Assembly (NCBI RefSeq): GCF_030684315.1
Contig: NC_081396.1
Span: 1,488,001-1,552,000 of the forward strand
Origin: Stegostoma tigrinum
Taxonomy: Eukaryota
DNA length: 64,000 nt
Direction of reading: 5' to 3'
Shown: piece by piece, positions 991 to 56,228 of the stretch
Position numbering within the stretch: the first letter of the stretch is position 1
Layout of the letters: each line of letters opens with the position of its first letter
The notes under the pieces: generated by a model
Seen by the model: only the letters and a program-made list of their open reading frames with translations
The model's database searches: none
Told to the model about the DNA's origin: nothing
Translations under genes and position numbers: made by a program

Positions 991-1025
991 TTTATTCCGA
1001 TTGAGTGTCTCCAGAGGCATAATTA
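991..1025 (-). promoter_or_regulatory. Conserved GPCR promoter cassette (homeodomain-like + O/E-like + TATA-like)
   Basis: Minus strand reads TAATTA-TG-CCTCTGGAGA-(11 nt)-AATAAA, 72 nt before the ATG. The first 18 nt are 17/18 identical to 17685-17702. Confidence 0.7.
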
Positions 1026-1440
1026 AGCTCTGACGTTTATTTATTTACAGTTTGCTGAAGAAACAGGCTAACACACATTGTTATGCCAGAAACTTGAAAC
1101 ATCAGTAAGATGACTGATGTGATTAAAGACATCCAGACTTGTTAGCAAAGTAAGTACTCTATTTGCCTGAATGATTCGACTGGAAATTTCAACTACTTTA
1201 TGCCTAATCCGGGCATAAACTCACATAGGTTTTTTGTACCACCTTGACAATCTTTCATTTCGTTGACTACCAACTAAGTAACAAGCACAGTCTTAAAATA
1301 GTCAAAATATTTGCGCCCACTCCTTTATGAGGAGGACAGTAGCAAAACATTATGATACTGAGAAAAAAAATGTATCATCAACTTTCGTTCTAAAAAAGGC
1401 GACTCCTATTTTAAAACAATGCTCCCCAACTGTACTAACC

Positions 1441-1575
1441 AAGTGTGAAACTGGATGAACTCAGCCTGAAACGTCAGCTTTTGTGCTCCTGAGATGCTGC
1501 TTGGCCTGCTGCGTTCATCCAGCTCACACTTGGTTATCTTGGATTCTCCAGCATCTGCAGTTCCCATCATCTCTC
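1441..1575 (+). mobile_element. Penelope pLTR fragment with short inverted 5' piece
   Basis: 'gaaacgtcagcttttgtgctcctgagatgctgcttggcc...' tail; the 5' 'aagtgtgaaactggatgaac' is an inverted copy of the internal 'gttcatccagctcacactt'. Confidence 0.7.
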
Positions 1576-1865
1576 CCCAACTGTGGTGTCTCCCACACGA
1601 GAAAATGGGTATTCCAGTCTAACACCGCTGTAGATGTCTAAAAATTGCATATGCATTCTGTCAACTCTCACTCTTCCAAAAAGTTGATTTTTTTCAGGCT
1701 TCTGAACTCAGGTTCTCCCTTCAGGATGATTGGTTTCAAGATTTTGCTCCATTTTGTTACTGTCGATGCTTCTGACATGCCTTCTCTGATGATTTCTCTG
1801 CCCCTCCCCCAGTCTACCAGGTAGTTCAATGTCATGAGACCCATGAAAGATAATAACTTGCATAT

Positions 1866-1960
1866 CTATAAGATATAACAACGTGTAGAGCTGGGTGAAC
1901 ACTGCAGGGCAAGCAGCATCAGAGGGGCATCAAGACTGACGTTTTGGGCATAGACCAAAG
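1866..1960 (-). mobile_element. Penelope pLTR fragment
   Basis: 'gtgtagagctgggtgaacactgcagggcaagcagcatcagag...ctgacgttttgggcatagacc' is a decayed reverse copy of the same tail. Confidence 0.6.
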
Positions 1961-3514
1961 CATAGAACTCAAACCATAGACCTCATTTACCAAACGGTCG
2001 CGTCAACAGGAGACAAATGTATCCATCTTCAAAGCATCAGTCTTATTTTATCTTTTTCATTGCAACTACAGTGGCCAAAATAGCCTTTAACATCAGTCAA
2101 TTATTAAGTTTAGCAGTCAGCTTCCACTTCCTTTCACAGCAATCTGATCTGGTATGTGAATAAATTTATCAAAATTTCCCATCAAACTTATCGAGGTTCA
2201 ACTGTTGGCCATAGGGCCACATTACCCATACAATTGGAGTGACTTGCATTGTATTAATCATCCCTTAGGAAAACAAAACAAAAAAAAACTGAAATGACCA
2301 AATTAAGTTAGACCCAACCTCTTAAGGGATCCGATAAAAAAAAATCATAGCTTTTGATAAATGTTCAGATGTGAAGGCTGTCAATGGTTAAGGAAAGAAA
2401 ACAAACCATCACATGAAGAAGCACTGACGTTCGTGAAATTCACAACAGTATCAAAAGAGAAATTGCCTCTCCTGGTCTATTTTATAAGATTTGCAATCAT
2501 CAGTGTTGAATTCCGACTCCACTGATAAAAGACATGATCAAAATCGAACAACAGTTGGAAATTTTGAACAGCCCAGAACTGTTTTCTCTGAAATGTCTTG
2601 CCTTTATAAATGATATTCCAGAGAAATATCTGACATTAGTTTAATCGAAAAAATAGAATGCACGAGGAGGCAATGGTTTCTCTCTATTGAACTGTTGCAA
2701 TTTGAAATTGTCAGACTCTTTTAAATCCACGTCACCAAAATAATAAAACCACTGTGGAATTTGCTGTATCTGAATCCATCCGCCATCAGACAGGCGTTTG
2801 AGCCAATTCACATAATGGCCCATTATAAAAGCAAATGTCACGAAGTGACGGATGCTTACTTTGAAATGAAATAGCCTGAAATAATTCTCAGAAAATTAAG
2901 ATAGAACAAGATTGTGTCCCTGATCGGTGGAAAGACAAATAGATGCAAACATAGACTGGAGCTACACTGTGGTGATAAAATGCAGCAGAAAGCAGACATT
3001 AGTTCATAAAAATGCTAAAATTGTCATGAGAGGTTGCAAAATGAAGCATATGGAACCCTGAGATATATTAAGCGGGACATTGCGTACAAACCAAAGAAAT
3101 TATGCTAAATTTGTAGAACATACTTTCACTCCAACTGGAATATTAGGTCGAGATCTGGACAAGATCATTTAGGACTGAATGTGTGAAGGCAAGATAGAAG
3201 ATGCATGAAGGTCAGCAGGAATTATTTCAGGTTCCTGGGAGTTCAAGTTCGCACAAGTACAACATTTTTTTCCGAATAGAAGAGAGGGTTGGGTGGTGGG
3301 AGGGGGAAAGATTTGAAGAGATGTTTTAAAATGATGAGGAGTCTGAATACAGCAGAGAAAGTTAAACGACTCCCATTGCTGGAAGGAGCAGCATTATTGT
3401 TGATGCTGGAATCTAATCTGAAGACAAGAGAAAAATGCTTGAGATCGCAGCAGATCAGGCAGCATACATGGAGAAACAGAGAGTTAACATTTCGAAACTA
3501 GGTAGCTCTCTTTC

Positions 3515-3810
3515 TATCCTTGGTTAGAACTGCTGCCTCCCTGCACCAGTAATCCAAATTCAATGTTTCCCTTGGGCGGCTGTCTCTGTGTAGTTTGCAC
3601 ATTCTCCCTGTGTCTGCGAGAAATTACTCTGGGCACAGTGATTTACTCCCATAGTCCAAATTGCCTGTCGTGACTAGGATGGTGAACGTACAGTAACCGT
3701 GGGAATTGCAGGATCACAGGATAAGGTATGGGTTTGGTGCGAAGCTCTTAGACGAACCAATATAAATTCAATGGACCGAATGACCTTCTTACACACTGTC
3801 GGAACTCTTT
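3515..3810 (+). mobile_element. HE1-like tRNA-derived SINE (decayed)
   Basis: 'ggttagaactgctgcctc...ctgtgtagtttgcacattctccctgtgtctgcg...cccatagtccaaa' with a LINE-derived tail 'atggaccgaatgaccttcttacacactgt'. Confidence 0.65.
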
Positions 3811-5829
3811 TTGTAAAAAAAACAGTTTCACAGAATGTTTCCAAAACATAATTGGATATGTTCAATACAGGTTAAATATGTCAAGTTCTGCATGAAGAGA
3901 AATCGTATTGTAATTTCAGAGATGAGGGACATGGGCAAAGTGATTAATTTACAAATATTTCATTTTAAAGTAGTATTTCCATTTTACTTGATGAAAGGTA
4001 AAGTCCATTCTACTTTCAGTAAGATATTTTCTATCCATCATGCGTGAGTGTGATTAAGCTGGATTTTCTCATGCTCAGTGGAAGATTCAGTAGGAATGGC
4101 AGATTTAGTGAAACAAACTGTCAATTGTCAAAAATATACACTTTTTTTATTTGTCATCTTAATATGTTATGAGAGTACTGCCTAACAGCCGTTCAATTTT
4201 TTTATGCTCCTTCATCAAGGTAGCCGTTTACATTTACACTTCACATTCATTAAAAGTTACATTTTAATTTTGTTTCATTTCAGAACCTAATTTCGTTTGT
4301 TTGAAGTCTTTTCCAAAGTGGGAACTTGGCTCACAAAAATCCAATTTTCAGTTTGTTACAGCTTGTGTTGATTCTGCTGTAGTTTCATTGTTACTCACGA
4401 GGGAAAGAAGCTTCTGAATCTCTGGGATCTTCAAGTCAGGACAATTCTGTTTCTCCTCCACGTACTTTGCACTTCTGCATTTTACGTTATATAGAATTTT
4501 CAGGAACAGGACTGGCTAACTGGACCTAAATTGAACACGACCAGTGTATGCACTCCAGACGAATTGTTCTCCACGCTTGCAATAATAAAATACTTCCACA
4601 CAAAGTGCCATGCTCTTAAATTCCTTTCTTCACCTTGAAATTTTCCTCAGCCTGAAAATTGCATCATTTCCTCCAGCTCCTGTGCTTCATTTATCAATGA
4701 GCTCTGAAACCGAACGGGTCGTCCCTTTTCTTTAAAAATAAGAGTCTCATTAATTTGTCGGTTTGTTCTGTTATTGAACATATGAATTCATAGCTCTTTG
4801 CTTTGCACTCAAATGCAAAATGACGGTCTTCCATACTTACCTCTTTGAACCCATGAATGAAGTAAAATGTTTCAGTGAATTTTGTTTACGACTGCTTCTC
4901 TTCCATTGGAAAGTGGAGCTGTCTTGTCGAACTCTTCAGGTTAGCACGTAGCGTTATGTAACTCTTTTTCAGCCACACAGGGAAGAGAAATCTTGCCAGA
5001 GCTGGCCAACAGAACGTGAATCATGTCAGGATATTTCACCTTACAACCTGCTTTGATTTTACAATAATTATGGCTGACGCTTGACCAGATTACCACCACA
5101 GTTAATTAAAAAAACATATTTCTTTATTATTCATTAATTGGATATGAAAAGCATTATCCAGGCCAGTGCTTATTGTCTTTCACTAATTGCCATGGAGAAG
5201 GTGTGGGAATGAACAGCCTAATTCAACAACTGTAGACCTCAGGCAGAAGCACACCATAACGTCTGCTTGGAAGGATGTTCAAAGGTTTTGACCCAGACAT
5301 TGTGAAGGACATTTTGTTTCTTTTTCTTTTGCTTCCCAACAAGTCTATATTTCAATGTTTAACATGTCATGATTAGTTGTTACATATACTCACGAATGTT
5401 CAAAAATCCCGTGGTCTTTTTACAAGAATTAATGAACTAATAGTTAAGGTTAAATAAAAAAAGAAAGAGCCCGACTATATTAATTTATAGTCTGTTAAAA
5501 ACAATGACATTAATCTTTTGAGACGTCTTTAATTTATTTATGGAATGCGGCCAAAGGGGGTCTTTTATTCTGTATCTATTGCGACATGTAAGCCACACTG
5601 TGTGAGGATGGCTGATTTGCTTCCCTGTGTACACTATTGAAACATACTTTTTTTATTTGCTTACAATCATAGCAATGTGGTAGCCATTAAACCTTTGTTT
5701 TAAAAAGACTTTTGCTGAAATAATTCAAAATTCACCTTGTTTAGATCCACCCCAAATCTCCATAGCATGAGGCTTGGCTTTCACATAGCAAATACAATGA
5801 AAATGCTGTAACTCTGCTGGTTCCCCTCA

Positions 5830-6075
5830 ACTGTGACTCTAAATGGAACACTTTACTCTGTCTTGACAGACGCATCATGCGTACCAACAAAGATCTAAAT
5901 GTATTCTACACCGTTCAGCGTGACACATTTCTGTATTTTGTGAAATGATTCTCTGCTAGCGCGGACAATGTCTGGAGAAGTCTTAAGTCACCGGTGCTTG
6001 TGTGTGTGTCTCGATCGTGTATGATATACATTAGGTTTCACACTAGTCCACAGTGGGCTCTGCTCTTCCAAAGCC
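5830..6075 (+). pseudogene. Highly decayed TCR V-segment relic A
   Basis: Remnants of LY..(R)Q, 'ttc tct gct' (FSA) and 'gtg tat gat..aca tta ggt tt', then CACACTA (6039-6045) at the heptamer position and nonamer-like TCCAAAGCC 21 nt later. Confidence 0.4.
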
Positions 6076-6252
6076 AAGAAAGAACTCTCAACTCCTTCTT
6101 GATTCATTTAGCCAATGTGGGTGTCGCTGATGTAGCAGTTTGTTATCTCTTTCCAATTGCTAAAGAGCGAAAAGCAAACAAGTGTTGGGCTGATCTGGAT
6201 TCACCTTGACAGAAGCATGGTTTATATCCTGCTCCCAAAAATAAAACTGCAA

Positions 6253-6382
6253 NNNNNNNNNNNNNNNNNNNNNNNNNNNNNNNNNNNNNNNNNNNNNNNN
6301 NNNNNNNNNNNNNNNNNNNNNNNNNNNNNNNNNNNNNNNNNNNNNNNNNNNNNNNNNNNNNNNNNNNNNNNNNNNNNNNNNN
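6253..6382. other. Assembly gap
   Basis: Run of N. Confidence 1.
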
Positions 6383-7081
6383 CAGTCTTGAGTTGTAATT
6401 GATCAGGAGAAAGAACTAACCTTGATTATTAACGGGGCACAGGTGTAACACGATTCGATTGTTTAGTGTGATTTTATGCTTTGATAGTCAACACCATCCC
6501 GGATATATGCAAGGAGATATAAGCACACGATGACAATATTCTGACTGACCACAGTAAAACAAAAATAAAATCAAAAACTCACTAGACTAGAAAAACATCC
6601 CCTGGCTGACAGAACTGATCAATTATTTAAATTTTAATGACACTAAAAAGAAAACAAAAGAAATCAATTTTCAAGTCCCTGTCTTTTGAATCTGTTTTAT
6701 TATAAACCTCCAAACAATCGCTAAAATGAACCAGCAATACTGAATAGACTTGAAATCTTTCTATAAATGGCTCGTCTGTCAGTCTTCGATGTCCATTCAT
6801 TTCGGGAGATGCTTTATTGTGCATTTGTCGCCATATGTAAGCCACATTCTGTGAGGGTGGCAGATTTGCTTCCTTAAATACATCAGCGAACCATATATTA
6901 ATTTCTGGCTTTTGTTCGTATTAGTAATGTTGCCAATGGAACTTCTTTTTTGAGAAAAAAAATCATGCTTAGTAATATAATTCAAAACTCACCTTGGTTA
7001 GATCCACCTCACATCTGCAATGCATTAAGCTTGGTTTTTGCATGGTGAACACAGTTACAGCACAACGACTCTCCTGCTTCT

Positions 7082-7332
7082 TTCCACTGTGACATCAAAT
7101 GGATCGCTATACGCTGCGTCAACAGATGTTTCATGGATTCCAGCAATGATCTGAAGATATTCTCGAGCAGTCAGAGCATTACATCTCCATTTTGTCTAGA
7201 AAGATTCACTGCTGACTCAGCAAAGTCTGGAAATCTCTTCAGTGGCTGGTACTCTTCTGTCTATCTCGATTGTGTATTACTCTACCTTATGTTTGACACG
7301 AACCCTTAAATGCAGTCAATACTTCCAAACCC
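7082..7332 (+). pseudogene. Highly decayed TCR V-segment relic B
   Basis: 'aga ttc act gct gac' (RFTAD) and 'ctg tct atc tcg att gtg tat tac tct acc tta', close to LSDSAVYYCAL codons; then gacacga + 22 nt + TCCAAACCC as a degenerate RSS. Confidence 0.45.
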
Positions 7333-10675: not shown

Positions 10676-10699
10676 ACAGAGCTCTAGAATTTCAGCTAA

Positions 10700-16950: not shown

Positions 16951-17684
16951 TAAGTGTTTCACTATGTAGTTTATTGTTACTAAACCAGTCTGGATCTTCA
17001 TATAATAAAAAAAACATGCCTGTTCCTGTTCATATTATACTCGTCTCTTTCCGAATCAAAACATCCACGAACATGCAATATTAGACATATGTTACCCATG
17101 TCTCCAATATATGTGAATTTAATGCTGCTGATCTAAACCACGTATCATGCACAACTTAGCTTATTGATTGCTCGCTTTCCTTCCTACCACGCCACTTATA
17201 AACTTGTGCTCAAGTGAAATCAGACTAAATAATTTAGAAAGTCCTTCTACATATGTACTTCAGCTGAAAATAAAGAGACATGCAGTTCTTCATGACGCAG
17301 AGCTTGCATTGCCTACTCTTCTATTTAATGAATAATGGTCCCACACACGCCAGATCCAAATCTATTGAAATAACTAGTTGGTTTTAAAGCTAAAATATTT
17401 CCCAATAAACAAAAGTTTGAAATGAATTTTATATCCATACACAAAGAATTTGGACCATGAAAGAAATGGAAAAGTTTCATTTTAGGTTGGTGATTGGACC
17501 TCATCTCAGTATCTGCAGTAAACAGTTCCACTTGATACAGACTCAAAGGCATTGTGAGGTGAGAGGAGATGGTGGAGGTTGCCGTTCATCGACAACTATT
17601 ACATCATCCTTAATTTCAAAGGAAAGCATAGAACCGTGAAATAGCTTATTTCATTTGAATGCAAGCCAGATGAATTTTGAAACT

Positions 17685-17719
17685 TAATTATCCCTCTGGA
17701 GACTCCCACTAGGAATAAA
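17685..17719 (+). promoter_or_regulatory. Conserved GPCR promoter cassette
   Basis: TAATTA-TC-CCTCTGGAGA-(11 nt)-AATAAA, 73 nt before the start-codon position (17792). Confidence 0.7.
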
Positions 17720-17791
17720 TGAAGGAGAACTTGAATGTTGAGCAGTGTTGAGCTACACACTTGGAGGAAACAATTTTGCTTCTAAAAGGTG

Positions 17792-17861
17792 ATTCACGGG
17801 AAAGCCACTGAAACCTTCTATGCCATCTGTTATCCTATTATCGCGGTTATCGGTGTTCCTG
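17792..17861 (+). CDS. GPR139-like GPCR paralog 2, exon 1 (start codon ATG>ATT)
   Basis: (I)HGKATETFYAICYPIIAVIGVP+G, 70 nt, GTAAGG donor at 17862. An in-frame TAA at 17783-17785 excludes an upstream ATG. Confidence 0.75.
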
Positions 17862-19274
17862 GTAAGGAATATGTAAAAAAAAAACATATTTATTCTTGTG
17901 AAGCAAATTGTCTCCTCTTTCAGGACAAAAATGACATTTTTGCTACAACATTAAATGCTGTCTGAATAAGGACATAAACTAATTCCCAATATATTTCTGT
18001 GCCTTTTAAGTAATTGTACTCCGTGGTACTCAATGAGAGCACATCATTTGAGCTGGGTCCATTGAACATTAAAGGATACAATTCAATTTTTTATTCGTTA
18101 TTCATGGAATTACTATTGAGCCAATGACTGAAAAATGGATCTTATTGTGGAACTTGCGATATCAATGTGTCATCATGGTGGAAGTTAGTTTTTACACCAT
18201 GACAGCAATCTGCAAACTTATCTATGTTTTTAAAATAATACTATATCTTGCCATACAGTGATATGCAGTTAGTACTGTTGTCTCAATGCAGTATGGAAAA
18301 TTAATTTTGACAACATAATCACCACACTACCTGAATTGTAATAACAACATATTTCCAATCAATGTAGGAATTTGTCTTGCAATCTCAGAATGAAAGAGGT
18401 ATCAGGAGCAGTATAGTGAGGTCTAATCGTTTTTTCCTCATTTTTGTTGAACTATTTGGAATTAAGCTCAGAAACTATTGAAAGTTTAAGACACACTTGC
18501 AAGATGTTTCATCTGCTGTGTTTGTTGTTTGCACGTCGAGATTTGTGCAGTTTAAGTAGCAATAGATTTGATGACTATGGAATGGGATTTCCCTGGAAAG
18601 GTTTACATTTGTTGACACTCCCTGCTTATTAGCTTGGAAGGTAGACTTACTGTAGCTGCATTTCATGTGGTGTGGTCAATTGCAGTTCAAATATATCTAT
18701 ATTTTTTACTCAGAGATGCAAATTCCTTATTCAAGACGAAAGGTATCTCTGGTGACGGAGGTTTGTTAGAAGGAACGTCTTAAGCAAGAAAGAAAAGAGG
18801 GATTATATGAGTAACTAAATACCAGAGACTTAGACTTTCACAGTTAAATTCACAAATGACCGTGATAAAGAGTTGAAAATCAGAAATGCAGAAGGTACGA
18901 CAATTAGAGGGTCTCTGAGAAATATGGTTGTTCTGGAACTTCAGTAGGACCTCAGTAGAGAGAGGATGAGGCGTTTCAAATGTCGAAGTTCCATGATGTC
19001 AAATCCTTGAAAATACCAGTCTAGGAGCCAATTTAGGTGAATAAACACAAAGCAGCTGGGTCGACAGGGATTGTCATGAATAAAAGCAACGAGTTGCAAA
19101 TCGTTTGCTGAAATATTAGTACAGTGTCGTGAGAGCATATTTTGTGGTGGGATCAATGTTTATGCTTTAAAGTGGCAAACAAATTCAAAATGTTTCAGGA
19201 TATGTGGAATTCGCAGATAGTATGCGATAGACCGGGCCATTGCAATCAGCAATTGGAGAGATGAGCTCAGTCAG

Positions 19275-19785: not shown

Positions 19786-20690
19786 CAAACCTGGCAGTGA
19801 TCATAATCCTATCGCAAGGACGATGTGGTCTTTCTCATTGCATCACCATCTATCTGCCCGCGTCAGCTGTGACCGACTTCCTTGTTATCATTTCTGGCTG
19901 TATCCTCAACAGAATTGGTGGAATCTACTTTTCGAATAGTGTTATGTTTACTACCCAAGGGTGCACCCTTAGTACAGTGCTCATTTATACCACTCGCGAT
20001 GGGTCAGTTTGGCTTACTGTGGCCTTCACCATCGACCGCTTTGTGTCTATCCGTTGTCCCAGCCTAAAAATTAAGTATTGCACCCTAAAAACTGCTTCAT
20101 GGATCATAGGAATGCTCTGTGTCCTGAGCTGCGTCAAGAACGTCCCATATTATTTTGTCTTTCAGCCATTGTACGTGGTGGATGGAGTGCCATGGTTCTG
20201 CGACATCAAACCTATCTGTTACACATCTCCTGCCTGGCAGGCTTATGACTGGCTGGACCATATCTTAACTCCCTGTCTTCCGTTCCTTCTGATTCTGCTC
20301 CTGAATATCCTGACAGCGAGATACATCTTGGCAGCGAGCAGAATTCGTCAGAAGCTCTGTGTCACCAAGAATCATGGAGACTTAGAGATGACCAACCGCA
20401 AAAAGTCCATTGTCCTGCTCTTCGCCATCTCCCTTAGCTTCCTACTCTTGTGGGTAGCCTATATTGTGCATTATCTCTATGGACAGCTTACAGGTGAGGG
20501 ATATACAACGCCAAATGATCCATGGTACAGCTTTCAAGAGATGACCAACATGTTCCAGTTAGTCAACTCCTTGAACAATGTCTTCATCTTTGTTGTGACT
20601 CAGAAGAGATTCCGGGAGGAGGCGAAGAATCTAATAATGCATCCCTTCACTTGGCTCATTGGATGTTTTAAACATTGCAAAATAGACTGA
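19786..20690 (+). CDS. GPR139-like GPCR paralog 2, exon 2 (open frame; gene possibly pseudogenising)
   Basis: Acceptor 'cttttctacAG' ends at 19785. Frame continues ANLAVIIILSQGRCGLS...SVWLTVAFTIDRF...TPCLPFLLILLLN...FLLLW...NNVFIF.TQKRFR with seven hydrophobic segments. Spliced CDS is 975 nt (324 aa). Confidence 0.9.
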
Positions 20691-20754
20691 TTGGTCTTTT
20701 TTGTTCGTTGTTTCAAATCTATCATTGTGGCCTGTTGTGTCACACTCTTTGTCT

Positions 20755-20843
20755 CTTTCTTTCCTTTTCTCTTTCCTCCTTCCTTTTTTTCTTTCTTTCT
20801 TTATTTCTCCCTTCCTTCCTTCAATTCTGTTTTTCTTTCTTTC

Positions 20844-20879
<36 letters not shown>

Positions 20880-20936
20880 GTTCTTTCTCTCTTTCATCCT
20901 CCTTTTTTGACTCTTTCATTCTCTCTTTCTTTCTCA
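20755..20936 (+). repeat. (CTTT)n-rich simple repeat
   Basis: Degenerate CTTT tract just after the GPCR stop codon; explains the spurious F/S-rich and K/E/R-rich ORFs. Confidence 0.9.
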
Positions 20937-21164
20937 TTCAAATTCACACGATCTCTTTCACAATCACTCCTTCTGTCAAAGTCACGTCAGGAACATAATC
21001 TTTTCTCACCCTGTCTCACTCTCACTCAAACGCACAACCTTGCTCATATATAGTTCCTCACATAGTAACTCACATTCACTTACATCCATTGTTCAACTCA
21101 TTCAGAAAAGAATAATATTGACACACACAAACTTGCTCTCGTATGCATTCACACAGAGGACATA

Positions 21165-23430: not shown

Positions 23431-23583
23431 NNNNNNNNNNNNNNNNNNNNNNNNNNNNNNNNNNNNNNNNNNNNNNNNNNNNNNNNNNNNNNNNNNNNNN
23501 NNNNNNNNNNNNNNNNNNNNNNNNNNNNNNNNNNNNNNNNNNNNNNNNNNNNNNNNNNNNNNNNNNNNNNNNNNNNNNNNNNN
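23431..23583. other. Assembly gap
   Basis: Run of N. Confidence 1.
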
Positions 23584-28701: not shown

Positions 28702-28832
28702 NNNNNNNNNNNNNNNNNNNNNNNNNNNNNNNNNNNNNNNNNNNNNNNNNNNNNNNNNNNNNNNNNNNNNNNNNNNNNNNNNNNNNNNNNNNNNNNNNNN
28801 NNNNNNNNNNNNNNNNNNNNNNNNNNNNNNNN
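28702..28832. other. Assembly gap within a (TG)n-like tract
   Basis: Run of N flanked by TG-rich sequence. Confidence 1.
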
Positions 28833-45772: not shown

Positions 45773-45818
45773 ATGATTTCCCTGTGGGTTTTTGTAATAA
45801 TAACGGCCATGCCGCCCG
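45773..45818 (+). pseudogene. TCR V-segment leader exon
   Basis: MISLWVFVIITAMPP+G, 46 nt, phase 1; GTGAGT donor at 45819; 81-nt intron ending 'tttttgttgcAG' at 45899. Confidence 0.85.
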
Positions 45819-45899
45819 GTGAGTCAGGAAATAATTTGTTAGCGCATGTTTCATCTGTTTTACTCAGATTTTCGACAACCTAATTATTTTTTGTTGCAG

Positions 45900-46205
45900 G
45901 AACGAGCAGCCAAGATTCAGATTCCCCGGAATCACTTGAGCAAACAGTTCAGGAAGGAAATAACATAAGCCTGAACTGCAGTTACCAAACAACATATACT
46001 GCTCCGAATCTCTTCTGGTACGTCCAGTACCCAGGCGAACCTCCGAGATATTTATTGAAGAGATTCAGCAAGAAACAGGGAGACGAGTCTCAAGAAATAT
46101 CCAACGGCTTTTCTGTTTTTTGGACAAAGAAAAGAAGATAGTTACATTACAAATAACAACTGTTTCTCGCTCTGACTCTGCTGTCTGTCACTGTGCACTG
46201 AGCTC
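45900..46205 (+). pseudogene. T-cell receptor V-alpha/delta-type (TRAV-like) V exon, frameshifted
   Basis: GTSSQDSDSPESLEQTVQEGNNISLNCSYQTTYTAPNLFWYVQYPGEPPRYLLKRFSKKQGDESQEISNGFSVF [1 nt missing in T6 at 46116-46121] LDKEKKIVTLQITTVSRSDSAVCHCALS. Both Ig-V cysteines and WYxQ are present. Confidence 0.9.
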
Positions 46206-46246
46206 CACACTGATACAAAGGTTCAGTCAGCCCGTATACAAAATCC
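46206..46246 (+). other. Recombination signal sequence (23-type, spacer lengthened to 25)
   Basis: Heptamer CACACTG at 46206-46212 and nonamer ACAAAATCC at 46238-46246; the spacer ends in 'gtat', an apparent 2-nt duplication. Confidence 0.85.
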
Positions 46247-47039
46247 AAGGCGATCTCAACAGCTCACCTCCCTCGACACTACCACACTAACAGAAACACA
46301 CACACACGCACGCGCGCACGCACAGTTCCAAAATATCTCCACTGCGATTTGTGTAGTTTACTGTTCGATATGAAATCACTCTTTATATCGATTGTACAAA
46401 TCATTCATGATCGGGAGCAATGCATTTAATTGCGGCACGAATACTGCTACAAACTTAGTTCCTGTTTATCAATGACCAAAATCGGGTTTGACACTATCGA
46501 GTGATCAGAATTCAAGATAATGTTCATTTCAATTTTTATTCAGCAATCATCGAAGAGATCTTGCACTTGCATTGACTTTATTTTCGACCAATGTCGATGG
46601 ATCGGTGAATAATCCTGGACAAAATGGAGCTGGGTCTTGTACTGAAATTTGGCATGAGTGGATCAATGTAATCGAACTGAGTGGAGGAGAATGTTCATAG
46701 GTCCAAATGGCTTTGGTCCATCCGATACTGTGTGAGCATGTGGTGAGATCTCTGACGTAATGGCCTGGAGAAGAAAAGGAGGTAACAGCCATTTTTCTGT
46801 CGCCTGGTTATTCTGTCACAAATGGGCCAGTTGAATCACTAGACTCAAATGAGAGATCATCAGCTCTGGCTTGAAGCAGTTCAGCTTCAATTACTTCTCT
46901 TTTTAATCTACCATTTTTAATGGTAGGTTGTAAATTGAGAACAAGGGGAACATATCATACAGTTTTGTCTGAAGGGAACGGCCAAATGTGGAAGCTCAAG
47001 TGATAGGTCAGATACAATTGAGACCCTTACGAAGCACAA

Positions 47040-50000
47040 TGGTTAGGAAATCGTGGTCATGGAAGAAGGAAGCTGTGTCATCAGCGTTGTTTTGTAAGTT
47101 GTCATCACCTGAAAAGATTTGACAAATTTGAAGGAACTGGGAGGATGTGATGCAGTTCTTGCAAGGCATGGGATGTGCTGAGCTGCAGTGAGCGGGGGTG
47201 GGCGGGGGGGGGGGTGCGGGTTATGTGAGTCAATAGCTTTGTAGTGGCTGGTAGTGGACAGCTTATACACTGAAATGGAGACAGACAGAGATCAAGAAAA
47301 GGAAGGAATGCGTCCCAAATTGATGATCTGAAAGTTACAGAGGTTGGAAATGGGCAACAAAATTAATAACATTTTCAACGTTCTGGAATGAATTTCAAAC
47401 AACACTGAAGCAGTCGTCGACATATCGAAAAAAAAAGAAAAATAAGTTGTGGCACGGAGACATTGTCAGACTGGATTAAGGATCTTTCCAGATACCCCAT
47501 AATGAAGCTCAGATAACTGGAACCCATGTATTTGCCCACAAACACTCCTTTGAATTGGCCGAATTGAGATAAATCAAAGAAGAAATTGCTCAGTAAGCGA
47601 ACGGGACCAGTTCAGCAGATGAGAGTTGTCGTGGAAGCTGACAATTCAGGCCTCTGTTGGATGAAAATATCGGGAGCTGTCAGACCATCATAGTGGAGAA
47701 CGAAGTTATTGAGGGATTGGTCATCTGTGGTGGACAGGATGCATTTGAACCTGTAAACTGCAAACTGAGTATGTTGGACGACATCCGAGGAATCACAGAT
47801 ACGCAAAAAGAAGATGTTGACCAGCGGAGGGAGGATGGAGTCAAGGTAGGAGGAAATGAGCAAAATGGGGCAGGAACAGTCTGATAGAATGGGCCTACCA
47901 CTGGAGTTTGGGAGTAAGGCAGGATCGGTTGGTCCAAGGTGGGAACAAATCTAATTTGGAGGAAGTGTGTGTTGGGAGGGAGATATCCAGAGGTAATGAC
48001 GTCGATTATCGTCCAGGCGACAATAGCTTGATGTCCCGACGTACGGGCATCATCAAGTGGGTGATAGAAAGACATGCTTAGGAGCAGGTGTGTAGACTTC
48101 ACAAAGTAAGGATCAGTACGCCCTGCTACAACAGCACCATTTTTGTTGACTGGTTTGAGAACAAAATTAGATTGCAAATAAGTGTGCAAAGTGTGGCAAG
48201 TTTCGATGGGGTCAGGTTAGAGTGGGTGAGAGGACCAGAGAAATTGAAACGGCTCAGGGCATGACGCTAGATTTCAATGAAGTGATTGACAGTACGTAAG
48301 AGGCTGGGAAGAGGTACAGGTGAAGGTAGAATATTGGAGTCAAGTGAAGTGGTCAGTTTAACGAGGGCGATGTTCCCGCCTGAAGAAGCAAGCATGGAAA
48401 CAGAGGCAGTGGGGAAAAAATGTTCTAAATTATGATGAGCCCTGAATTCATTAAGTTTGGGGCATTAGGGTATGAAGTAGAGTCATTTGCCGACGACTGT
48501 ACATTCAGCATCAGAGATGGGAAGGTCAGCAACATCAGTGACCACAAGGCAGGATTCGCAGGAGTGGACACAGCATCTCAGAAAAAAAAGTGATGGCATC
48601 TCAGGGCTTTGCAGTTGGCTGGAAACAAAAATAAAGTGAGAACAACGAAAATTACAGCACAGGAATAGGCCCTTCAGGTCTCCAATTCTACAGTGATCCA
48701 GATCGCCTATCTAAAGCTGTCATCTATTTTCCAAGGATGTGTATCCCTCCGCCATTGTGCCTGTCTCTACCTCATCAGCAGGCAACGCGTTCCAGGCACC
48801 CACCAGCTTCTGTGTAAAGAACTTGCCACGCATATCTCCCTTAAGTTTTTCCCCTCTCACCTTGAAATCGTCACCCCTAGTAACTGAGTCTCCAACTCTG
48901 GGAAATGGCTTCTTGCTATCCACACTGTCTATACATCTCATGCTTTTGTGGAGCTCAAACTGGTTCCCCTGTTCCTCCTCTGGTAACCTTTTCCCTTATA
49001 ATGTAATTCGTCATAATCTGCTCAAACCCTCTTCACAACTAGTGTCCTCCATACCAGGCAACATCCTGTGAACCTGCTCTGCACCCTCTCCACAGCATCC
49101 ACAAACTTTTGATAATATGGTAACCAGAACTGCACACAGTATTCCAACACTGGAATAGGCCCTTCAGTCCTCGAAACCTACGGTGATCAAGATCCTAGAT
49201 CTAAAGTTGTCGCCTATTTTCCAGAGGATGTGTATCCCTCTGCTCCCTACCCATTTATGTGTCTGCCTAGATAAATCTTAGATGACAGACGAAAGTCCGA
49301 TATAAATGTAACATGACCTGCCAACTCTAGTACTCAATACCGCATCCGATGAATGAAAGCATGTCGTATACCTTCTTTTCCACTCTATCGAAATGCCTCG
49401 CCAACTTCAGGGTACAATAGACCTGAACAGCCAGACCTCACTGTGCGCCAATTTTCCCCAGGGCTTTTCCATTTACTGTATAGTTCAGAAGGAGAGGTCC
49501 GCAGGACTGACACTACAGTCCGTAAGTTGTTCGAGTTGCACTTCTCAATGTCTGTAAAAATGAGCTGACAGTTTTAGCTGACGTGAAGGATGAGGTGAAA
49601 CTGGGGAATTATGCAGTTTTGAGAGATGGTCAGCCAAGATTGCTGCAGAGTGGGTTCGAGTGTGTAAATATGCCAGTGAATGACGGTGATTATGGTTCAC
49701 AGGATTTGGCGGGAATAGCAGTCCAAGGTAACTTGTATGCCCCGAAGATATTTGTAACCTTGGGTGGATTTGAAATACGAAGTGTGAAACAGTTGATCCC
49801 GACCAAGAACTTCCTGTAGCCGGTCATTTGAATTATCCTGTTGGAAACTCGACATGTTTGTCCTCAGCATGTCGTCGTGTGGCCGTGAGACACAGCATCA
49901 ACCAGAGGATAACGTCTCATCTTCAGACTACGCACTGTAGAACATTTTGTAGGCCATATTGAGTTCAACACCTTTTACTTGTTTGCCATTTCTTCTTTTC

Positions 50001-50340
50001 CTTTTAGCTTGTTATCATGCCCTCCTCTCCCCCAATCCCAATAATGGTTCTTTCAAGTCTGACAGGAGACACACCATTGTTATGCTCTTCGCAAATTCTG
50101 ATCACTTAATCTGAACTATTAGCATCTTTTCTCCACCAGCACTCTATACCCACTAACCCCACACCCCTACAAATGGTAAGTTAAATGTTCTCTTCACACT
50201 TCACTTCAGCCCTGCAGAAGATCCATATCGGCGAAAAAAGTTTGATTGCTCGATCTCCATGGATGCTGTTGGTCCCTCTGTGAGATCCAGAATCTGTTGT
50301 TTTCGGTGCAGATCCCAGTATCTGCAGGGAATTGTTCCTA
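47040..50340 (-). mobile_element. Decayed Penelope element with nested CR1 3' fragments (~48640-49480)
   Basis: Minus-strand Penelope RT relic ('VLKPVNKNGAVVAGRTD.Y', ~48150). CR1 peptide 'VTRGDDFKVRGEKLKGDMRGKFFTQKLVGAWNALP' (48720-48941). A second copy of the same LINE tail at ~49150-49285. Confidence 0.6.
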
Positions 50341-51348
50341 CATTTTGTTGAATTGACTGCCATGTATGTTCAAGGAATGCCTACCGTGAAAACGTTTTGT
50401 TCTTTCCTCTGACAGGAGTTCTGCTTGACTTTTTCACAATGTATGCCTTCATTGTTCTCCATTTAACTGCTGGTTTTCAACAAGGAGTTGCCAAAACTCA
50501 CTCCAACAGCAATGTTCTCTTCCTCAGCAGCAGCCAACAACTGATACTTACCCTGCATCGATTTCAACTCATTTTTCTCCCTTCTGTTCTGGTGAGGATT
50601 GTGGCAAATGTTCATGCTACCAGTTCCACACAGTTGAGTGCAGTTTCACTTCAGCAATCTGAAACATTCATTTGGCTCCAACTGTAGAGTCACCATGTTT
50701 TCACTAGTTTACAGGGGTATTCTAAAATGGAAAGATATTACAGCTCTACGTTTTGCCTGCACGTCGAAACTTATTTAATGAGCTGAGAGGCTGTGAACGA
50801 TGGTCCTCCATTGCTAGACCAACTGGTATATCAACAAACGTCACCCTATTTGCATCTGCATTTCAACTTAAATGTCCTCACGCCAAAATCATAACGACAG
50901 TCTCCATCACCGTGTAATCTTCACTTGTCAAGTGACACCCACAGACCTCAGCAAAATCCGGCAAAAATCTCACTCTGAAGTAAAAGGTTGTGATTTCAAC
51001 TCGCAATATTTATGAAAACAGAATGTGGAATTGCATTACGCAGCCTTGATGCATTTTTATCTTTCAATTTGAGAGAGCATCCCGCATTGAACATTTGGAA
51101 ACAGTTAATAAATATAGGGCAGAACAACTGATTTGAGGCTTTAAACATTGAGGAAAAAAATTGGAAATGCGAGTTCACAAAAAGCCTCGTGGTCTGATTG
51201 CTTAATCGTTGTCATATAACAGACTATAAATTAGGCCGCTTAACGTGTACTTGGGAGAATTAAATAACAATTGTTTTTCCTTGAAAGTTGAAAGCACATT
51301 TCTTTCCAGATACTGTGTGGCAAGCAATCCTGAACAATTAGGAATAAT

Positions 51349-51590
51349 CCCCTCCCTACCTCCCCACCTATACTCTCCTCTCTACCTGTCTTCTTTTCTC
51401 TCCATTTTCAGTCCACCTCCCGCTCTCTCCCTATTTATTCCACTTCCCTCACCCCATCCCCGTCTCTGATGAAGAGTCGAGGCCCGAAACGTCAGCTTTT
51501 GTGCTCCTGAGATGCTGCTTGGCCTGCTGTGTTTATCCAGCTCCACACTTCGTTATCTTGGATTCTAAAGCATCTGCAGTTCCCATTATC
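51349..51590 (+). mobile_element. Penelope 3' tail with hammerhead motif
   Basis: Close match to 27330-27572; CTGATGA-A-GAGTC-GA-GGCCC-GAAAC-GTC at 51466-51493. Confidence 0.8.
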
Positions 51591-52109
51591 AGTGATACAA
51601 TTAAGAATAACACTGGGTTTTCTTCTGGATTGTTTACTGTCTTGGACAGTATGTAATGATACAGTATAGAGGGATATTTATGTTGGAATTTGTCAATGCC
51701 TTGTCTGCATGACAGAGATTTGTGTGAAACAAGTTTTATTCTTTGTTATCATTGACAGTGTTTGAACGAATGTTTCCAGCATAGTTCTCTGTGTTCAACA
51801 TTTTTGCTGATTAAAAGACTTGCTTGATCATCAATATTGAAAGTAATATCTTTATGAATCTTGTACAAACCTACAAACTACTGCAGGCAGAATGAGCAAA
51901 CTATCCATCCCATCACGTGACTGCTGTTGCGTGAAGGAGATAATTACTGTGGATTGATGTCAGCATTAACTTTAGAATCATAGCAACACTTCCATTCTGA
52001 CAAATCTAACACTCTAAATTGATCAATGCTGAATATATCAATGCCAGCACTGCCTGATTTTTTTGACTTGGGCACTGCTGCAACATTAAGAAACATCATC
52101 TCAAAAAAG

Positions 52110-53560
52110 ATCTTCGAAGGTCAATGACAGTCAACGTTTCGCAATAGTTGGACTGCAAACGTGGCAAGAAATGCCCAATGTTAATTCGACTGAATGTTTT
52201 GATCACACCCTGTCGTGTAATGGCATGACTGTGAATGACTCACAGTTTTTTCACTGGTAAAGTGGGCATGCTTCACAGGAGTTTTAACCATCAAATTTGA
52301 CAGTGGAAAAGGAAGTGGGGATGACCTTTAGAAGGGACAAGAGTCAGAATCTCGGAAGGATTGATTTTCACTGACAAGAACCTGGTCAATAAATGACCAA
52401 TAATGCAACAGATTAACATCAGAGAAGCACAAGACACCACCTTTGAATAGAATCTGGACAGACTTGGTGATCTCTGATGATCGCAGAATTCAACAGTTCT
52501 GAGAGCATAGAGACTGCGACAGGACTTCAAAATTAGGAGATGAAATTGCTAAAATCGTGAAGCCTCCAGACAGAAAGGCAGTGAGGGTATGTGAATAAAT
52601 TGGATTAGACTGACTAAAACTGTGGACAGCAAATCCTTAGGATGGGTTTAAATTGAATTCTCAGTTACAGGAGCCATCTCAGTGGCCAGCAAGCGGCCTG
52701 AAATGATTCCTGTATGAACATATCTTTCATTCAATGGTGAATATTGAGCCATAAGCAATGAGTTTTGAAGTTAAAAAGAAGCCATTTTTGAGCATGGAAA
52801 ATCAAAGAGGTGGACTCTTTCAGTTCCAGAATAGTGAAACAGATTATTTCGTCCCGCTCAGTGTCATATTTCACTTTCTTCACCTTTCACAGCAAACTTG
52901 TTGGCGATTGTAATCCTAGCTCGACTTTGACCAGAAACAACATTGGAAAAGCAATATAAAATCTGCGTTGACAACAGCAAGTGAAAATTTTATCATTTTG
53001 GGGTGTGTACATAATATGCCTTACCCAATGTGTTGTCAAGCACACAAAAAGTGCGAAATTGGATTATGACTGAATATGTCCCATGTGTTTGAATGAAAGC
53101 AGTTGCGACAAGACTCATCAAGATTGACACAGTCCAAGGCAAATAGCTTGGTCGATTTGCACACCATCCTCAACTTTCAACTGTTTCTCCATCAATCACC
53201 GAAGAACAGTTGCAACAGTATCTACCTTCCATCAGTTGCAACTATCGGGACTTCCATCAAAAAAATGCAAGCAGTGAAAAATACAATCCCGCAGGGAAAA
53301 CGAGACGATGCAAGGGGAATCTAGCAGCTTGAAATTCTCCTCCAAGCCACATACCATCGCGACTTAGAATGACATCAGTTCTTCTGCAGTGCCATTGAGT
53401 CAAGATGGATGGTACCCTTTCTCATATAGCATTGTGACCACCCTACACGCTGAAGAATAGGTTCGTTTGAAGTAGGGATTTCACATGAACTTGTTCGAGA
53501 GCGATTGGGGATAGGCAAGAGGTTCCGTTCCTGCTCGCGATGTTCATATCGTATGACTGC
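52110..53560 (+). mobile_element. Old CR1/L2-like LINE relic interrupted by the inverted duplication
   Basis: Collinear remnants on both sides of 52248-52924: '...gtggcaag...aatggcatgact' then 'ttgaccagaaac...cacagtccaaggcaaatagc...tccaagccacataccatcgcgacttag'. Confidence 0.5.
52248..52924 (+). repeat. Inverted duplication, arm 1 (677 bp)
   Basis: Reverse complement of 54835-55511 with about three substitutions seen; the twin ORFs 52291..52530 (-) and 55229..55468 (+) differ at one residue. Confidence 0.95.
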
Positions 53561-53964
53561 ATTAATCAAAATGCACTTCATATGATCAAGGCTATAACCT
53601 TTGTTTTCAGAAACAGACAACATTTCAACCTATTTTGGCTAAATTGTGTTTAAGAAAGAAAGGAATAAGGTAAGGGGGTAGGAAAGAAGAAAAACAGAAT
53701 TGAAAAAAGCTGATAAGTGGCAGAATATGTTCATGTATTTTGCAGTCGGATTGTCAAAGAGCAGCAGAAAATGTGTAGTGTTAGGTTATAAAACACACAG
53801 CTGAGCAAGTAAATAGTAATTTCGTTGTAATGATATGATATAAGTGATACGTATCGGCCCTGAACGACAGACAGATTTTTAAAACATTAAATTTCGGAGC
53901 AGGCAGTGTTTCATACACAGTTGCACGGGAAATATTGGTAGGACAGTTTTCTGTTTTGCTCTGC

Positions 53965-54866
53965 CTATCGTTTTATGTAGGCGATGAGTATTTGGAAGGG
54001 GCATGTCAATAGCTTCTTCAGTTCCTTTCTGAACATTTTCTGCGACACCACATAAATGAAGATGTTGTTGCAGGAACTAATTAACATGAACATGTTGGTA
54101 GTTTCTTGAAGGATGTACTGTGGGGCTCCAAAGTTCAGGCTGCTGACGTACTCATCGCGTGCAACCAATCTGTAAAGGAAACGTCCGATATAGGTGGCCC
54201 AAAGGAGGAGGAAACTGAGCGTGACGGCAAACAGCAGGACGATTGACCTCTTACGGTTAGCCATCTCTATGTCATCACGATTTGCAGTGCTCAGAAGCCT
54301 CTTTCGTGCTCTGCTCGCTGCAAGGATGTGCCTGACAATCAGGACGTTGAGAAGCAGAATGAGGAGGAAAGGGAGAAAAGGGCTTAAGATACGGTCGAGC
54401 CAGTAGTATGATTGCCAGGCAGACGCAGTATGGAAATGGGGCTTGATGTTACAGAACCAGGGCACACCATCCAGAATGTATAAGGGTTCGTAGATAAAGT
54501 AGTATGGAATGTTCTTAATGCAGATAAAAATACAAATGATTCCGATGACTAGTGATGCAGTTTTCTCAGTGCAGTAAATGGACTTCATGCTCTGGCAGCA
54601 GAAGGACATAAACCGATCAATTGTGAAGGCCACTGTCAGCCATACAGAACCATCCCGAGCTGCATAGACCATCACAGCATTGATGCTGCAGCCGGGGGTG
54701 GTAGATAGGACACTGTAGCTAAAATAGATGCTGCCAATTCTGTTTAATACGCACCCGGTAAAGATGACAAAGAAATCTGCCACCGCTATTGCCTTCAGAT
54801 AGTAAGTGATGCATCGAGACAGTCCACATTGTCCTCGAGCTAGGATTACAATCGCCAACAAGTTTG
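53965..54866 (-). CDS. GPR139-like GPCR paralog 3, exon 2 (intact)
   Basis: Acceptor 'cacctttcacAG' ends at 54867. ANLLAIVILARGQCGLSRCITYYL...SVWLTVAFTIDRF...SPFLPFLLILLLN...SSCNNIFIY. Spliced CDS is 972 nt (323 aa), about 60% identical to paralog 2 by eye. Confidence 0.92.
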
Positions 54867-55511
54867 CTGTGAAAGGTGAAGAAAGTGAAATATGACACTG
54901 AGCGGGACGAAATAATCTGTTTCACTATTCTGGAACTGAAAGAGTCCACCTCTTTGATTTTCCATGCTCAAAAATGGCTTCTTTTTAACTTCAAAACTCA
55001 TTGCTTATGGCTCAATATTCACCATTGAATGAAAGATATGTTCATACAGGAATCATTTCAGGCCGCTTGCTGGCCACTGAGATGGCTCCTGTAACTGAGA
55101 ATTCAATTTAAACCCATCCTAAGGATTTGCTGCCCACAGTTTTAGTCAGTCTAATCCAATTTATTCACATACCCTCACTGCCTTTCTGTCTGGAGGCTTC
55201 ACGATTTTAGCAATTTCATCTCCTAATTTTGAAGTCCTGTCGCAGTCTCTATGCTCTCAGAACTGTTGAATTCTGCGATCATCAGAGATCACCAAGTCTG
55301 TCAAGATTCTATTCAAAGGTGGTGTCTTGTGCTTCTCTGATGTTAATCTGTTGCATTATTGGTCATTTATTGACCAGGTTCTCGTCAGTGAAAATCAATC
55401 CTTCCGAGATTCTGACTCTTGTCCCTTCTAAAGGTCATCCCCACTTCCTTTTCCACTGTCAAATTTGATGGTTAAAACTCCTGTGAAGCATGCCCACTTT
55501 ACCAGTGAAAA
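54835..55511 (-). repeat. Inverted duplication, arm 2 (donor: intron 3' end, acceptor and first 32 nt of exon 2)
   Basis: Reverse complement of 52248-52924. Confidence 0.95.
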
Positions 55512-56050
55512 TTACAGATAAGCAACCATTCTTCCCTTTTTTCAGAAACTATTGCATCCGCTGATGATATAAACAGATGATAATACCTTGAAAGTCGAAC
55601 ATGCAAAACTCCTCTGAAGAAGACAATGTAAGAATTAACTTTAAATCTTTTGAAAACACTCATTTCTTCCTGCATCTCTTTTGTCATTCTAGATGAAAAG
55701 CCAATGGTGCTGAATTATCACGAAACATAACAACGTTACTATTTCATCTCACATTGAATACATTAGATTGCACCTCAATACATTATGACAGAAGCTCATG
55801 TTAGAAATTGAATGGTCTAAAATTCAAGCGTTTTATTACTTAAGAAATATCAGCTTTACAGAAGTGCACTTCAAGGTACTGATTTTTAAAGTTCTGAAAT
55901 ACCAGTGCAAAGAATGCCATAACGTACCATAACGCAATCTAATATTGTGAGCTGTTATTCTCGGACAACACCAAATATTAGAAACAATATGAAAGAGAAG
56001 AACAAATACATATGAAGAAAATAAAGATTTCATTGGAATCCATTAATTAC

Positions 56051-56120
56051 CAGGTGCGCCAATAACAGCAAGAAAGGGATACACAATGGCAAAGAAGATT
56101 CCATTTGCTGGACCATGCAT
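56051..56120 (-). CDS. GPR139-like GPCR paralog 3, exon 1
   Basis: MHGPANGIFFAIVYPFLAVIGAP+G, 70 nt, GTAATT donor at 56050-56045. Confidence 0.9.
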
Positions 56121-56193
56121 CCTTATTTTCAGAGAATGAAGGAATGCCAGAGGATGGAGGCTTTATGTCTGAGCCATGTTCATTTGTCCCTTA

Positions 56194-56228
56194 TTTATTC
56201 TAACTTAGGCTCCCCGAAGGGACAATGA
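56194..56228 (-). promoter_or_regulatory. Conserved GPCR promoter cassette
   Basis: TCATTG-TC-CCTTCGGGGA-(11 nt)-AATAAA, 74 nt before the ATG. Confidence 0.6.

Follow-up and report, generated by a model that had tools for sequence, protein, structure and literature searches.

Three paralogous two-exon GPCR genes (A, B and C) lie in a stretch of 64,000 nucleotides of the Stegostoma tigrinum genome (contig NC_081396.1, positions 1,488,001 to 1,552,000; hereafter the window), and they share an upstream block of about 65 nt. This block is probably, at a chance of roughly 70%, the proximal promoter of their family, a group of two-exon class-A orphan GPCRs specific to elasmobranchs. It would be a heritage of the family ancestor, retained by purifying selection. 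Within it, a 35-nt cassette that aligns without gaps is found upstream of all three genes, with the layout TAATTA (A and B) or TCATTG (C), 2 nt, CCTCTGGAGA (A and B) or CCTTCGGGGA (C), 11 nt and AATAAA. The original prediction had located the three cassettes correctly (Table 1), and the rigid spacing it described, including the 11 nt before AATAAA, holds, as no indel occurs within the 35 nt of the three copies. Its first exons of 70 nt were also found, each with 70 coding nt and a GT donor at the end. Its distances of 72, 73 and 74 nt from AATAAA to the start codon have to be corrected, the actual gap being 71, 72 and 73 nt in genes A, B and C.

Table 1. Positions of the upstream elements and exons of genes A, B and C in the window
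Gene	Feature	Position	Strand	Basis or remark
A	Conserved upstream block	964..1027	-	Three-way ungapped alignment, shuffle test, landmarks
A	Cassette	1025..991	-	Within block 964..1027, with TATA-like GAATAAAT
A	Predicted Inr CA, +1	967	-	Sequence landmarks
A	Exon 1	850..919	-	70 nt from ATG at 919, encodes MHDPPNGLIFAIFYPIIAIIGAP
B	Conserved upstream block	17683..17746	+	Alignment, shuffle test, landmarks
B	Cassette	17685-17719	+	Within block 17683..17746
B	Predicted Inr CA, +1	17744	+	Sequence landmarks
B	O/E-like site TCCCTCTGGA	17691-17700	+	Only one of the three at ≤1 mismatch from TCCCNNGGGA
B	Exon 1	17792..17861	+	70 nt, ATT at start-codon position
B	Exon 2	19786..20690	+	End of TM1 to C-terminus, intact ORF (7tm_1)
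C	Conserved upstream block	56167..56230	-	Alignment, shuffle test, landmarks
C	Cassette	56228..56194	-	Most divergent copy: TCATTG, CCTTCGGGGA
C	Predicted Inr CTCAGA, +1	56170	-	Sequence landmarks
C	Exon 1	56051..56120	-	70 nt from ATG at 56120, encodes MHGPANGIFFAIVYPFLAVIGAP
C	Exon 2	53965..54866	-	Intact ORF, 7tm_1, DRF motif

The comparison rests on three copies, one of which (gene B) belongs to a gene without an ATG. Across the cassette, the three genes agree at 22 of 35 columns, with pairwise identities from 66% (B-C) up to 86% (A-B), and across the extended block the three-way identity is 31/64. The cassette is thus better conserved than its flanks, where identity is at background, at 7/89 in the upstream flank and 6/38 in the interval from the block to the start codon. 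A set of 300 shuffles that preserved dinucleotide composition, each scored for its best 35-nt three-way match with offsets of ±20 permitted, gave a mean of 11.6 (sd 0.78) and a maximum of 15. When the regions upstream of genes A, B and C were compared with the whole window by blastn, matches fell only on the three regions made up of exon 1 and the block, so the introns and distal flanks are not alignable, as had been claimed at the outset. Three N gaps (6253-6382, 23431-23583 and 28702-28832) overlap no cassette or exon, the nearest lying 2.7 kb past the stop codon of gene B, and they influence inter-gene distances only.

In the promoter, a TATA-like box (GAATAAAT) would be set at fixed spacing from both an initiator-like CA and an activator site of 20 nt. 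The TATA-like box is invariant in genes A, B and C, and, counted from the first A of AATAAA, the CA follows after 29, 30 and 29 nt, respectively, where the surrounding sequence is Inr-like; at the level of sequence, this is the arrangement of a focused TATA plus Inr core promoter, in which a TATA-like element lies about 30 nt before an initiator CA. With transcription starting at this CA, the predicted 5′UTR would measure 48-50 nt and the activator site would lie at about -59 to -40, formed by an AT-rich homeodomain-type core (TAATTA) that directly abuts a run of pyrimidines and then one of purines (TSCCTYYGGRGA). From these landmarks we infer both the position of the transcription start and the binding of an activator at the upstream site, for which one plausible pair would be an EBF-type factor and a homeodomain protein of the LIM/Emx type. 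Counting against the promoter reading, the first base of AATAAAT does not fit the TATA consensus, and the block could in principle sit inside a longer 5′ leader. Readings of the element as a CTCF, NF-kB, STAT or MEF2 site were dismissed by eye only.

Elements shared by the promoters of a whole family are known from other multigene families with stochastic or tissue-specific expression, such as the protocadherins (the conserved sequence element), Ig V genes (octamer and TATA) and V1R genes (conserved promoter regions). The shark block resembles them in being a short element at a fixed distance before the first coding exon, within flanking DNA that has diverged, but its sequence differs from theirs, and no CTCF-core or octamer match is seen by eye.

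The encoded proteins belong to the rhodopsin class of GPCRs, with Pfam PF00001 (7tm_1) scores of 50.4 and 59.2 bits, above the curated cut-off of 30.5, in searches run exon by exon. The names GPR139 and GPR142, which shark proteins carry through the automatic annotation of NCBI, reflect a likeness at the level of the class-A 7TM fold and Pfam 7tm_1. GPR139 is the best match of the shark proteins among solved structures (PDB), yet a remote one (E 9e-7, 32 bits, tied with GPR21), and the best 120 relatives are all chondrichthyan paralogs with 50-90% identity; membership in the GPR139/GPR142 subfamily was therefore rejected, and the shark proteins form a large chondrichthyan expansion of their own rather than GPR139 orthologs. 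A metagenome scan with a 40-sequence alignment of the family returned only GPCR fragments of other organisms (27-48% identity), and the literature searched contained no account of this large clustered orphan GPCR family. Exon 1 (MHGPxxG..YAIYYPxLAxIGVP) is kept across sharks and rays, and therefore the placement of the promoter close to the ATG is probably family-wide.

Judged from their sequences, genes B and C are old paralogs. Their second exons share 59.7% of amino acids and 66% of nucleotides, and their 4-fold sites are 40% identical, which is near saturation; at this age, the conservation of the block is as strong as that of coding DNA. In the tree, each of the two has its own 1:1 ortholog in Rhincodon, and the split between them falls at a polytomy that also contains lamniform and carcharhiniform genes.

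Exon 1 of gene A has its GT donor at 849-848 and encodes an N-terminus that fits the family consensus, and exon 2 lies past the left end of the window. Gene B has ATT instead of ATG and an in-frame TAA three codons upstream, and its exon 2 is preceded by a pyrimidine-rich acceptor; the 1:1 ortholog in the whale shark (Rhincodon, P0063) has the initial M and starts with MHGQATEPFYAICYP, and the ATT may reflect a recent pseudogene, a base error or a variant. The exon 2 protein of gene C is 90% identical to a Rhincodon typus protein. A search of sequencing runs with gene C returned no RNA run, only four runs with DNA-like contigs that all come from a single sample; these contigs, placed at 80% likeness, confirm the locus, with pile-ups of paralogs on exon 2 but nothing informative about paralogs at the promoter, and over the cassette they show zero differences among the matches listed.

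A first alternative falls within the promoter reading: the upstream element would be a pair of Lhx2/Emx2 homeodomain and EBF O/E sites, the genes would be expressed in olfactory sensory neurons and the family would be a hitherto unrecognized one of shark olfactory or chemosensory receptors. We consider this possible but tentative. In mouse, the proximal promoters of OR genes contain O/E and homeodomain motifs along with TBP motifs close to the TSS (Clowney, 2011; Plessy, 2012; Rothman, 2005; reviewed in PMC12547500), and the putative shark promoters share with them an AT-rich region upstream of a large clustered GPCR family, with candidate TAAT sites (in the cassettes of genes A and B) and relaxed O/E-like sites less than about 100 nt from the presumed TSS and a TATA-type element. 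They differ in that mouse motifs vary in order and position from gene to gene, whereas old shark paralogs keep identical spacing to the base, and in that the coding sequence of mouse ORs lies in one exon behind non-coding 5′ exons, whereas in the shark genes the ATG and 70 coding nt already lie in the first exon. The family is a large lineage-specific expansion with variable residues concentrated in extracellular-facing parts, a pattern typical of chemoreceptors, and few canonical ORs, TAARs and ORAs are expressed in the shark nose (PMC10116579, PMC11979771). Pointing weakly the other way, no GPCR is among the 50 most abundant and specific genes of a catshark “brain & olfactory epithelium” library (PMC11979771).

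At the level of single sites, the assignment is uneven. The TAAT core of the originally proposed homeodomain site is present in genes A and B, which have TAATTA (at -58 and -59 from the predicted +1) abutting the pyrimidine-run/purine-run element, but not in gene C, where the cassette has TCATTG in place of a TAAT core and the only TAATTG lies at -102. The O/E site, correctly described at the outset as a relaxed rather than perfect match, is within one mismatch of TCCCNNGGGA in gene B (TCCCTCTGGA) and, by hand count, two mismatches away in genes A and C, outside the list of sites with at most one mismatch. Such O/E-like sites occur in the window about as often as expected (15 against 15.7, none of them perfect), and homeodomain hexamers upstream of the genes show no enrichment either (one in 300 nt, the background being 2.3 per kb).

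A second mouse counterpart is the composite pattern of the Greek Islands, WWAHDRRBHHHHNDRDD, in which Lhx2 and Ebf sites lie 1 bp apart (Monahan, 2017, PMC5608512; Pulupa preprint, PMC11643329). Its likeness to the shark element is a homeodomain-type core beside a relaxed EBF-like stretch of pyrimidines and purines at stereotyped spacing, and its Ebf half accepts pyrimidine/purine stretches as long as the distance from the Lhx2 site does not change (PMC5608512). The composite of the mouse element Sfaktiria, TAATTGA followed by TCTCCAAGGAAT, resembles the shark version TAATTA followed by TCCCTCTGGAGA, but the latter is one base shorter between the halves, which brings the EBF-like decamer 1 bp nearer to TAATT than in mouse. 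By hand count, the published pattern is missed at position 7 in genes A and B and at positions 2 and 7 in gene C; the window contains 142 exact matches in cassette orientation, without any of the three cassettes among them, and this number shows no enrichment over the 128 ± 12 expected. The premise that juxtaposed homeodomain and O/E sites are a hallmark of mammalian OR promoters and enhancers holds in mouse for the enhancers, the Greek Islands, and not for the promoters, from which the composite is depleted (PMC5608512, PMC12547500). The shark element does not have the location of an intergenic enhancer, as it lies in the putative promoter about 40-60 nt from the presumed TSS and 71-73 nt plus 29 nt upstream of the start codon.

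Less probable by a clear step is that the block is transcribed, either as a 5′-leader element (a uORF or another form of translational control) or as the 3′ end of an intron that follows a non-coding first exon. All three copies do have an ATG 8-10 nt before the conserved CAG, but it opens unrelated frames, an in-frame extension of 19 codons in A, a uORF of 16 codons in B and one of 4 codons in C, and because these frames are not conserved the uORF reading was rejected. As a splice acceptor the CAG was rejected as well, for it lacks a preceding polypyrimidine tract, the pyrimidine fraction of the preceding 20 nt being 0.3-0.4 compared with 0.85 at the true exon 2 acceptor. Conservation instead peaks at the TATA-like octamer, which has an Inr-like CA at the canonical distance.

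The promoter reading could also be given a lymphoid form, in which EBF1 reads the EBF-like site in B-lineage or other immune cells, which would fit genes placed among T-cell-receptor V segments; this is very unlikely. The neighborhood includes a TRAV-like V pseudogene at 45884-46287, taken from the stop-to-stop ORF list, and regular expressions for RSS and V domains gave no matches in the window. Linkage, however, does not equal co-regulation, and the O/E match is weak here too. The OR clusters of mammals likewise flank the TCR alpha/delta locus and the MHC. That the block has no function, its similarity being a residue of recent duplication or gene conversion, or chance, is highly improbable, for although the genes are paralogs of one cluster, no shuffle exceeded 15/35 against the 22 observed, similarity ends sharply at both block edges and in the intron, the 4-fold sites of B and C are near saturation, and identities of 66-86% are unlike a recent conversion tract.

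As the proximal promoter of the family, the cassette would have kept its spacing base for base since about the time when the galeomorph shark orders separated, and this retention marks the paralogs as a co-regulated receptor repertoire. In catshark, OR, TAAR and ORA genes are few and mostly without nasal expression (PMC10116579, PMC11979771). It is conceivable, though doubtful, that the cassette is a true Lhx2/Emx2 plus EBF promoter and that the elasmobranch “GPR139-like” genes form a fifth, unrecognized family of vertebrate olfactory receptors. If so, this family would account for the good sense of smell of sharks despite their near lack of canonical ORs, TAARs and ORAs, and sharks would have, at a fixed position in every promoter, a composite-type HD/EBF site that mouse uses in distant enhancers. 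Regulation by the olfactory HD/EBF pair would point to a missing shark chemoreceptor family and give an independent, simpler version of the control logic of OR genes; if other factors regulate the genes, the cassette of about 65 nt would still be a compact handle on the cell type and the factors of the family.

The three 35-nt upstream cassettes lie exactly where the original prediction had placed them, in front of the first exons of genes A, B and C, three orphan paralogs of the rhodopsin class with two exons each (Pfam 7tm_1, 50-59 bits). In gene orientation they read TAATTATGCCTCTGGAGACACTCAATCGGAATAAA in gene A, TAATTATCCCTCTGGAGACTCCCACTAGGAATAAA in gene B and TCATTGTCCCTTCGGGGAGCCTAAGTTAGAATAAA in gene C. 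The copies align without an indel and are identical in 22 of 35 columns, against a best score of 11.6 +- 0.8 (maximum 15) in 300 dinucleotide-preserving shuffles. Identity extends through a block of about 64 nt around the cassette (31 of 64 columns), reaching a conserved ...GCAG/TCAG, and outside this block it falls to 7/89 in the upstream flank and 6/38 in the stretch between block and start codon. The cassette is therefore better conserved than its flanks, as had been proposed, and blastn likewise confirms that no detectable similarity is left between the introns and flanks of the three genes. The distances from AATAAA to the start, which had been put at 72, 73 and 74 nt, are each one nucleotide shorter (71, 72 and 73 nt). 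A search of sequencing runs with gene C yielded four DNA-like contig sets of one sample and no RNA; aligned to the window, these contigs confirm the locus, and among the matches listed the gene C cassette shows no differences. A CRE half-site-like ACGTCA (TGACGT on the + strand) immediately precedes the cassette or overlaps its 5' end in genes A (1032-1037) and C (56226-56231); its offsets differ, and it is absent from gene B.

The invariant core of the cassette, GAATAAAT, is one base off TATAAAT, and in all three copies a conserved CA follows 29-30 nt past the first A of AATAAA, in the initiator-like contexts CTCAGA (C), AGCAGT (B) and AGCAGG (A). As read from the sequence, this spacing is that of a focused TATA plus Inr core promoter. 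Transcription would start at 967 (-), 17744 (+) and 56170 (-), with a predicted 5'UTR of 48-50 nt. A second conserved part spans about -59 to -40, on the 5' side of the TATA-like box; it consists of an AT-rich core directly followed by T(C/G)CCT(C/T)(T/C)GG(A/G)GA and is a putative activator-binding site. Judging from this anatomy, the cassette is probably the conserved proximal promoter of the GPCR family (probability about 0.7).

The original prediction was more specific, as it read the cassette as a homeodomain (Lhx2/Emx2) plus O/E (EBF) promoter of the olfactory-neuron programme, an interpretation that is partly supported. The resemblance is real: TAATTA is a classic Lhx2/Emx2-type core, TCCCTCTGGA of gene B is one mismatch off the EBF consensus TCCCNNGGGA, and the shark TAATTA|TCCCTCTGGAGA much resembles TAATTGA|TCTCCAAGGAAT, the Sfaktiria composite used for EMSA. 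In mouse composites, moreover, the Ebf half accommodates runs of pyrimidines and purines as long as its distance from the Lhx2 site is maintained (PMC5608512). However, it is loose, as TAAT is absent from gene C at the cassette position, genes A and C have two mismatches each to the EBF consensus (hand count), and the composite pattern WWAHDRRBHHHHNDRDD is matched exactly by none of the three cassettes, the fit failing at position 7 in A and B and at two positions in C. Neither EBF-like sites (15 vs 15.7 expected) nor the composite pattern (142 vs 128 expected) are in excess in the window, and homeodomain hexamers are not enriched upstream of the genes. Compared with mouse, the shark EBF-like decamer is also one base nearer to TAATT; in the mouse composite, inserting 2 bp was enough to weaken binding of the Lhx2-Ebf fusion protein (PMC5608512). 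Calling the juxtaposed sites a hallmark of odorant-receptor (OR) promoters was overstated, because in mouse the side-by-side composite is an enhancer mark and is depleted from OR promoters (PMC5608512, PMC12547500), although separate O/E, homeodomain and TBP motifs are indeed present there (PMC12547500). A specifically olfactory Lhx2/EBF promoter is an attractive minority reading, and an unlikely one.

A conserved uORF is unlikely, since the ATGs found just 5' of the conserved CAG in all three copies open unrelated frames in A, B and C. The same CAG was rejected as a splice acceptor, the preceding 20 nt being 30-40% pyrimidine vs 85% at the real exon-2 acceptor.

Between genes B and C, exon 2 shows 59.7% protein and 66% DNA identity, and its four-fold degenerate sites, at 40% identity, are near saturation. 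In a maximum-likelihood tree with 40 members of the family, B and C each pair with their own Rhincodon (whale shark) ortholog at a path length of ~0.11-0.12, and they meet only at a polytomy that also contains lamniform and carcharhiniform genes, with a summed path of ~0.9. Cassette identity, from 66% (B-C, A-C) to 86% (A-B), is at the level of coding sequence despite the lost similarity of introns and flanks and the near-saturated four-fold sites, which indicates that the cassette is under purifying selection. Recent duplication, gene conversion and chance are disfavoured as sources of the similarity by paralog age and local conservation.

Coordinates of the cassettes, genes and neighbouring features in the window
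Feature	Position	Strand	Remark
Gene A cassette	1025..991	-	block begins at 1027
Gene B cassette	17685..17719	+	block begins at 17683
Gene C cassette	56228..56194	-	block begins at 56230
Gene A exon 1	919..850	-	exon 2 past left window end
Gene B exon 1	17792-17861	+	
Gene B exon 2	19786-20690	+	
Gene C exon 1	56120..56051	-	
Gene C exon 2	54866..53965	-	
CT-rich low-complexity repeat	20691-21053	+	straight after gene B stop; one frame SFFLSFFLS...
TRAV-like V segment	45884-46287	+	contains ..NISLNCSYQTTYTAPNLFWYVQYPGEPPRYLL..; frameshift before ..DSAVCHCAL
677-nt inverted repeat	52248-52924 and 54835-55511		arms 100% complementary, 1910 nt apart
Retroelement pol fragment, reverse transcriptase (RVT_1)	59515-59961	-	
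Retroelement pol fragment, RNase H + integrase zinc-binding domain	63145-63984	+	
N runs (assembly gaps)	6253-6382, 23431-23583, 28702-28832		all intergenic

Protein searches were made per single exon; the top match of the main exon of gene C is a Rhincodon typus protein (90% identity), which places the source near the whale shark, and tblastn and blastn found no further paralog copies in the 64-kb window. The N runs, the nearest of which is 2.7 kb beyond the gene B stop codon, lie outside all cassettes, exons and introns used; the uncertainty is limited to intergenic distances. In gene B, positions 17792-17794 read ATT, where the paralogs and its 1:1 whale-shark ortholog (protein P0063) have an ATG/Met start; an in-frame TAA lies three codons 5' of the ATT, exon 1 lacks any further ATG in this frame, and exon 2 is intact. 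Given the Met of the ortholog, gene B may be a young pseudogene or carry a base error, or it may use a non-AUG start. The introns of A (~783-800, -) and B (~17909-17925, +) have in common an acceptor-like TGTYTCYT..CTTTCAGGA, 50-66 nt 3' of the exon-1 donor, where gene C has TTTCAT; this stretch could serve as an alternative splice site or as a control element within the intron, or the resemblance may be due to chance.

One arm of the inverted repeat comprises the last 645 nt of the gene C intron with its splice acceptor, and continues 32 nt into exon 2. The perfect match between the arms suggests that the repeat arose very recently or is an artefact of the assembly. DNA contigs of one sample at 53730-53964, 55061-55302 and 55570-55806 contain a second form beside the perfect one, with 13-24 differences per ~240 nt (5-10%), a sign of either a second, divergent haplotype or a very close copy of the gene C locus. 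The TRAV-like segment, at which a strict search found no canonical RSS, shows that T-cell-receptor V-type segments are interspersed with the GPCR genes of the cluster.

Sharks, rays and skates account for all of the 120 best database relatives, at 50-90% identity; these carry automatic NCBI names such as GPR139, GPR142 and FMRFamide receptor-like, among others; GPR139 is the nearest solved structure, with an E value of only 9e-7. A metagenome scan for the family returned distant GPCRs only. A search of the accessible literature found no paper on this shark orphan GPCR family, and two catshark olfactory studies cover four classical families only (PMC11979771, PMC10116579). Variable columns are concentrated in the N-terminal part of TM3, in ECL2 and in the TM6-ECL3-TM7 region, a pattern shared with ligand-diversifying receptor families. 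Throughout the family the exon-1 peptide is conserved, and the two-exon layout with its ATG-proximal promoter is thus probably ancestral in the family.
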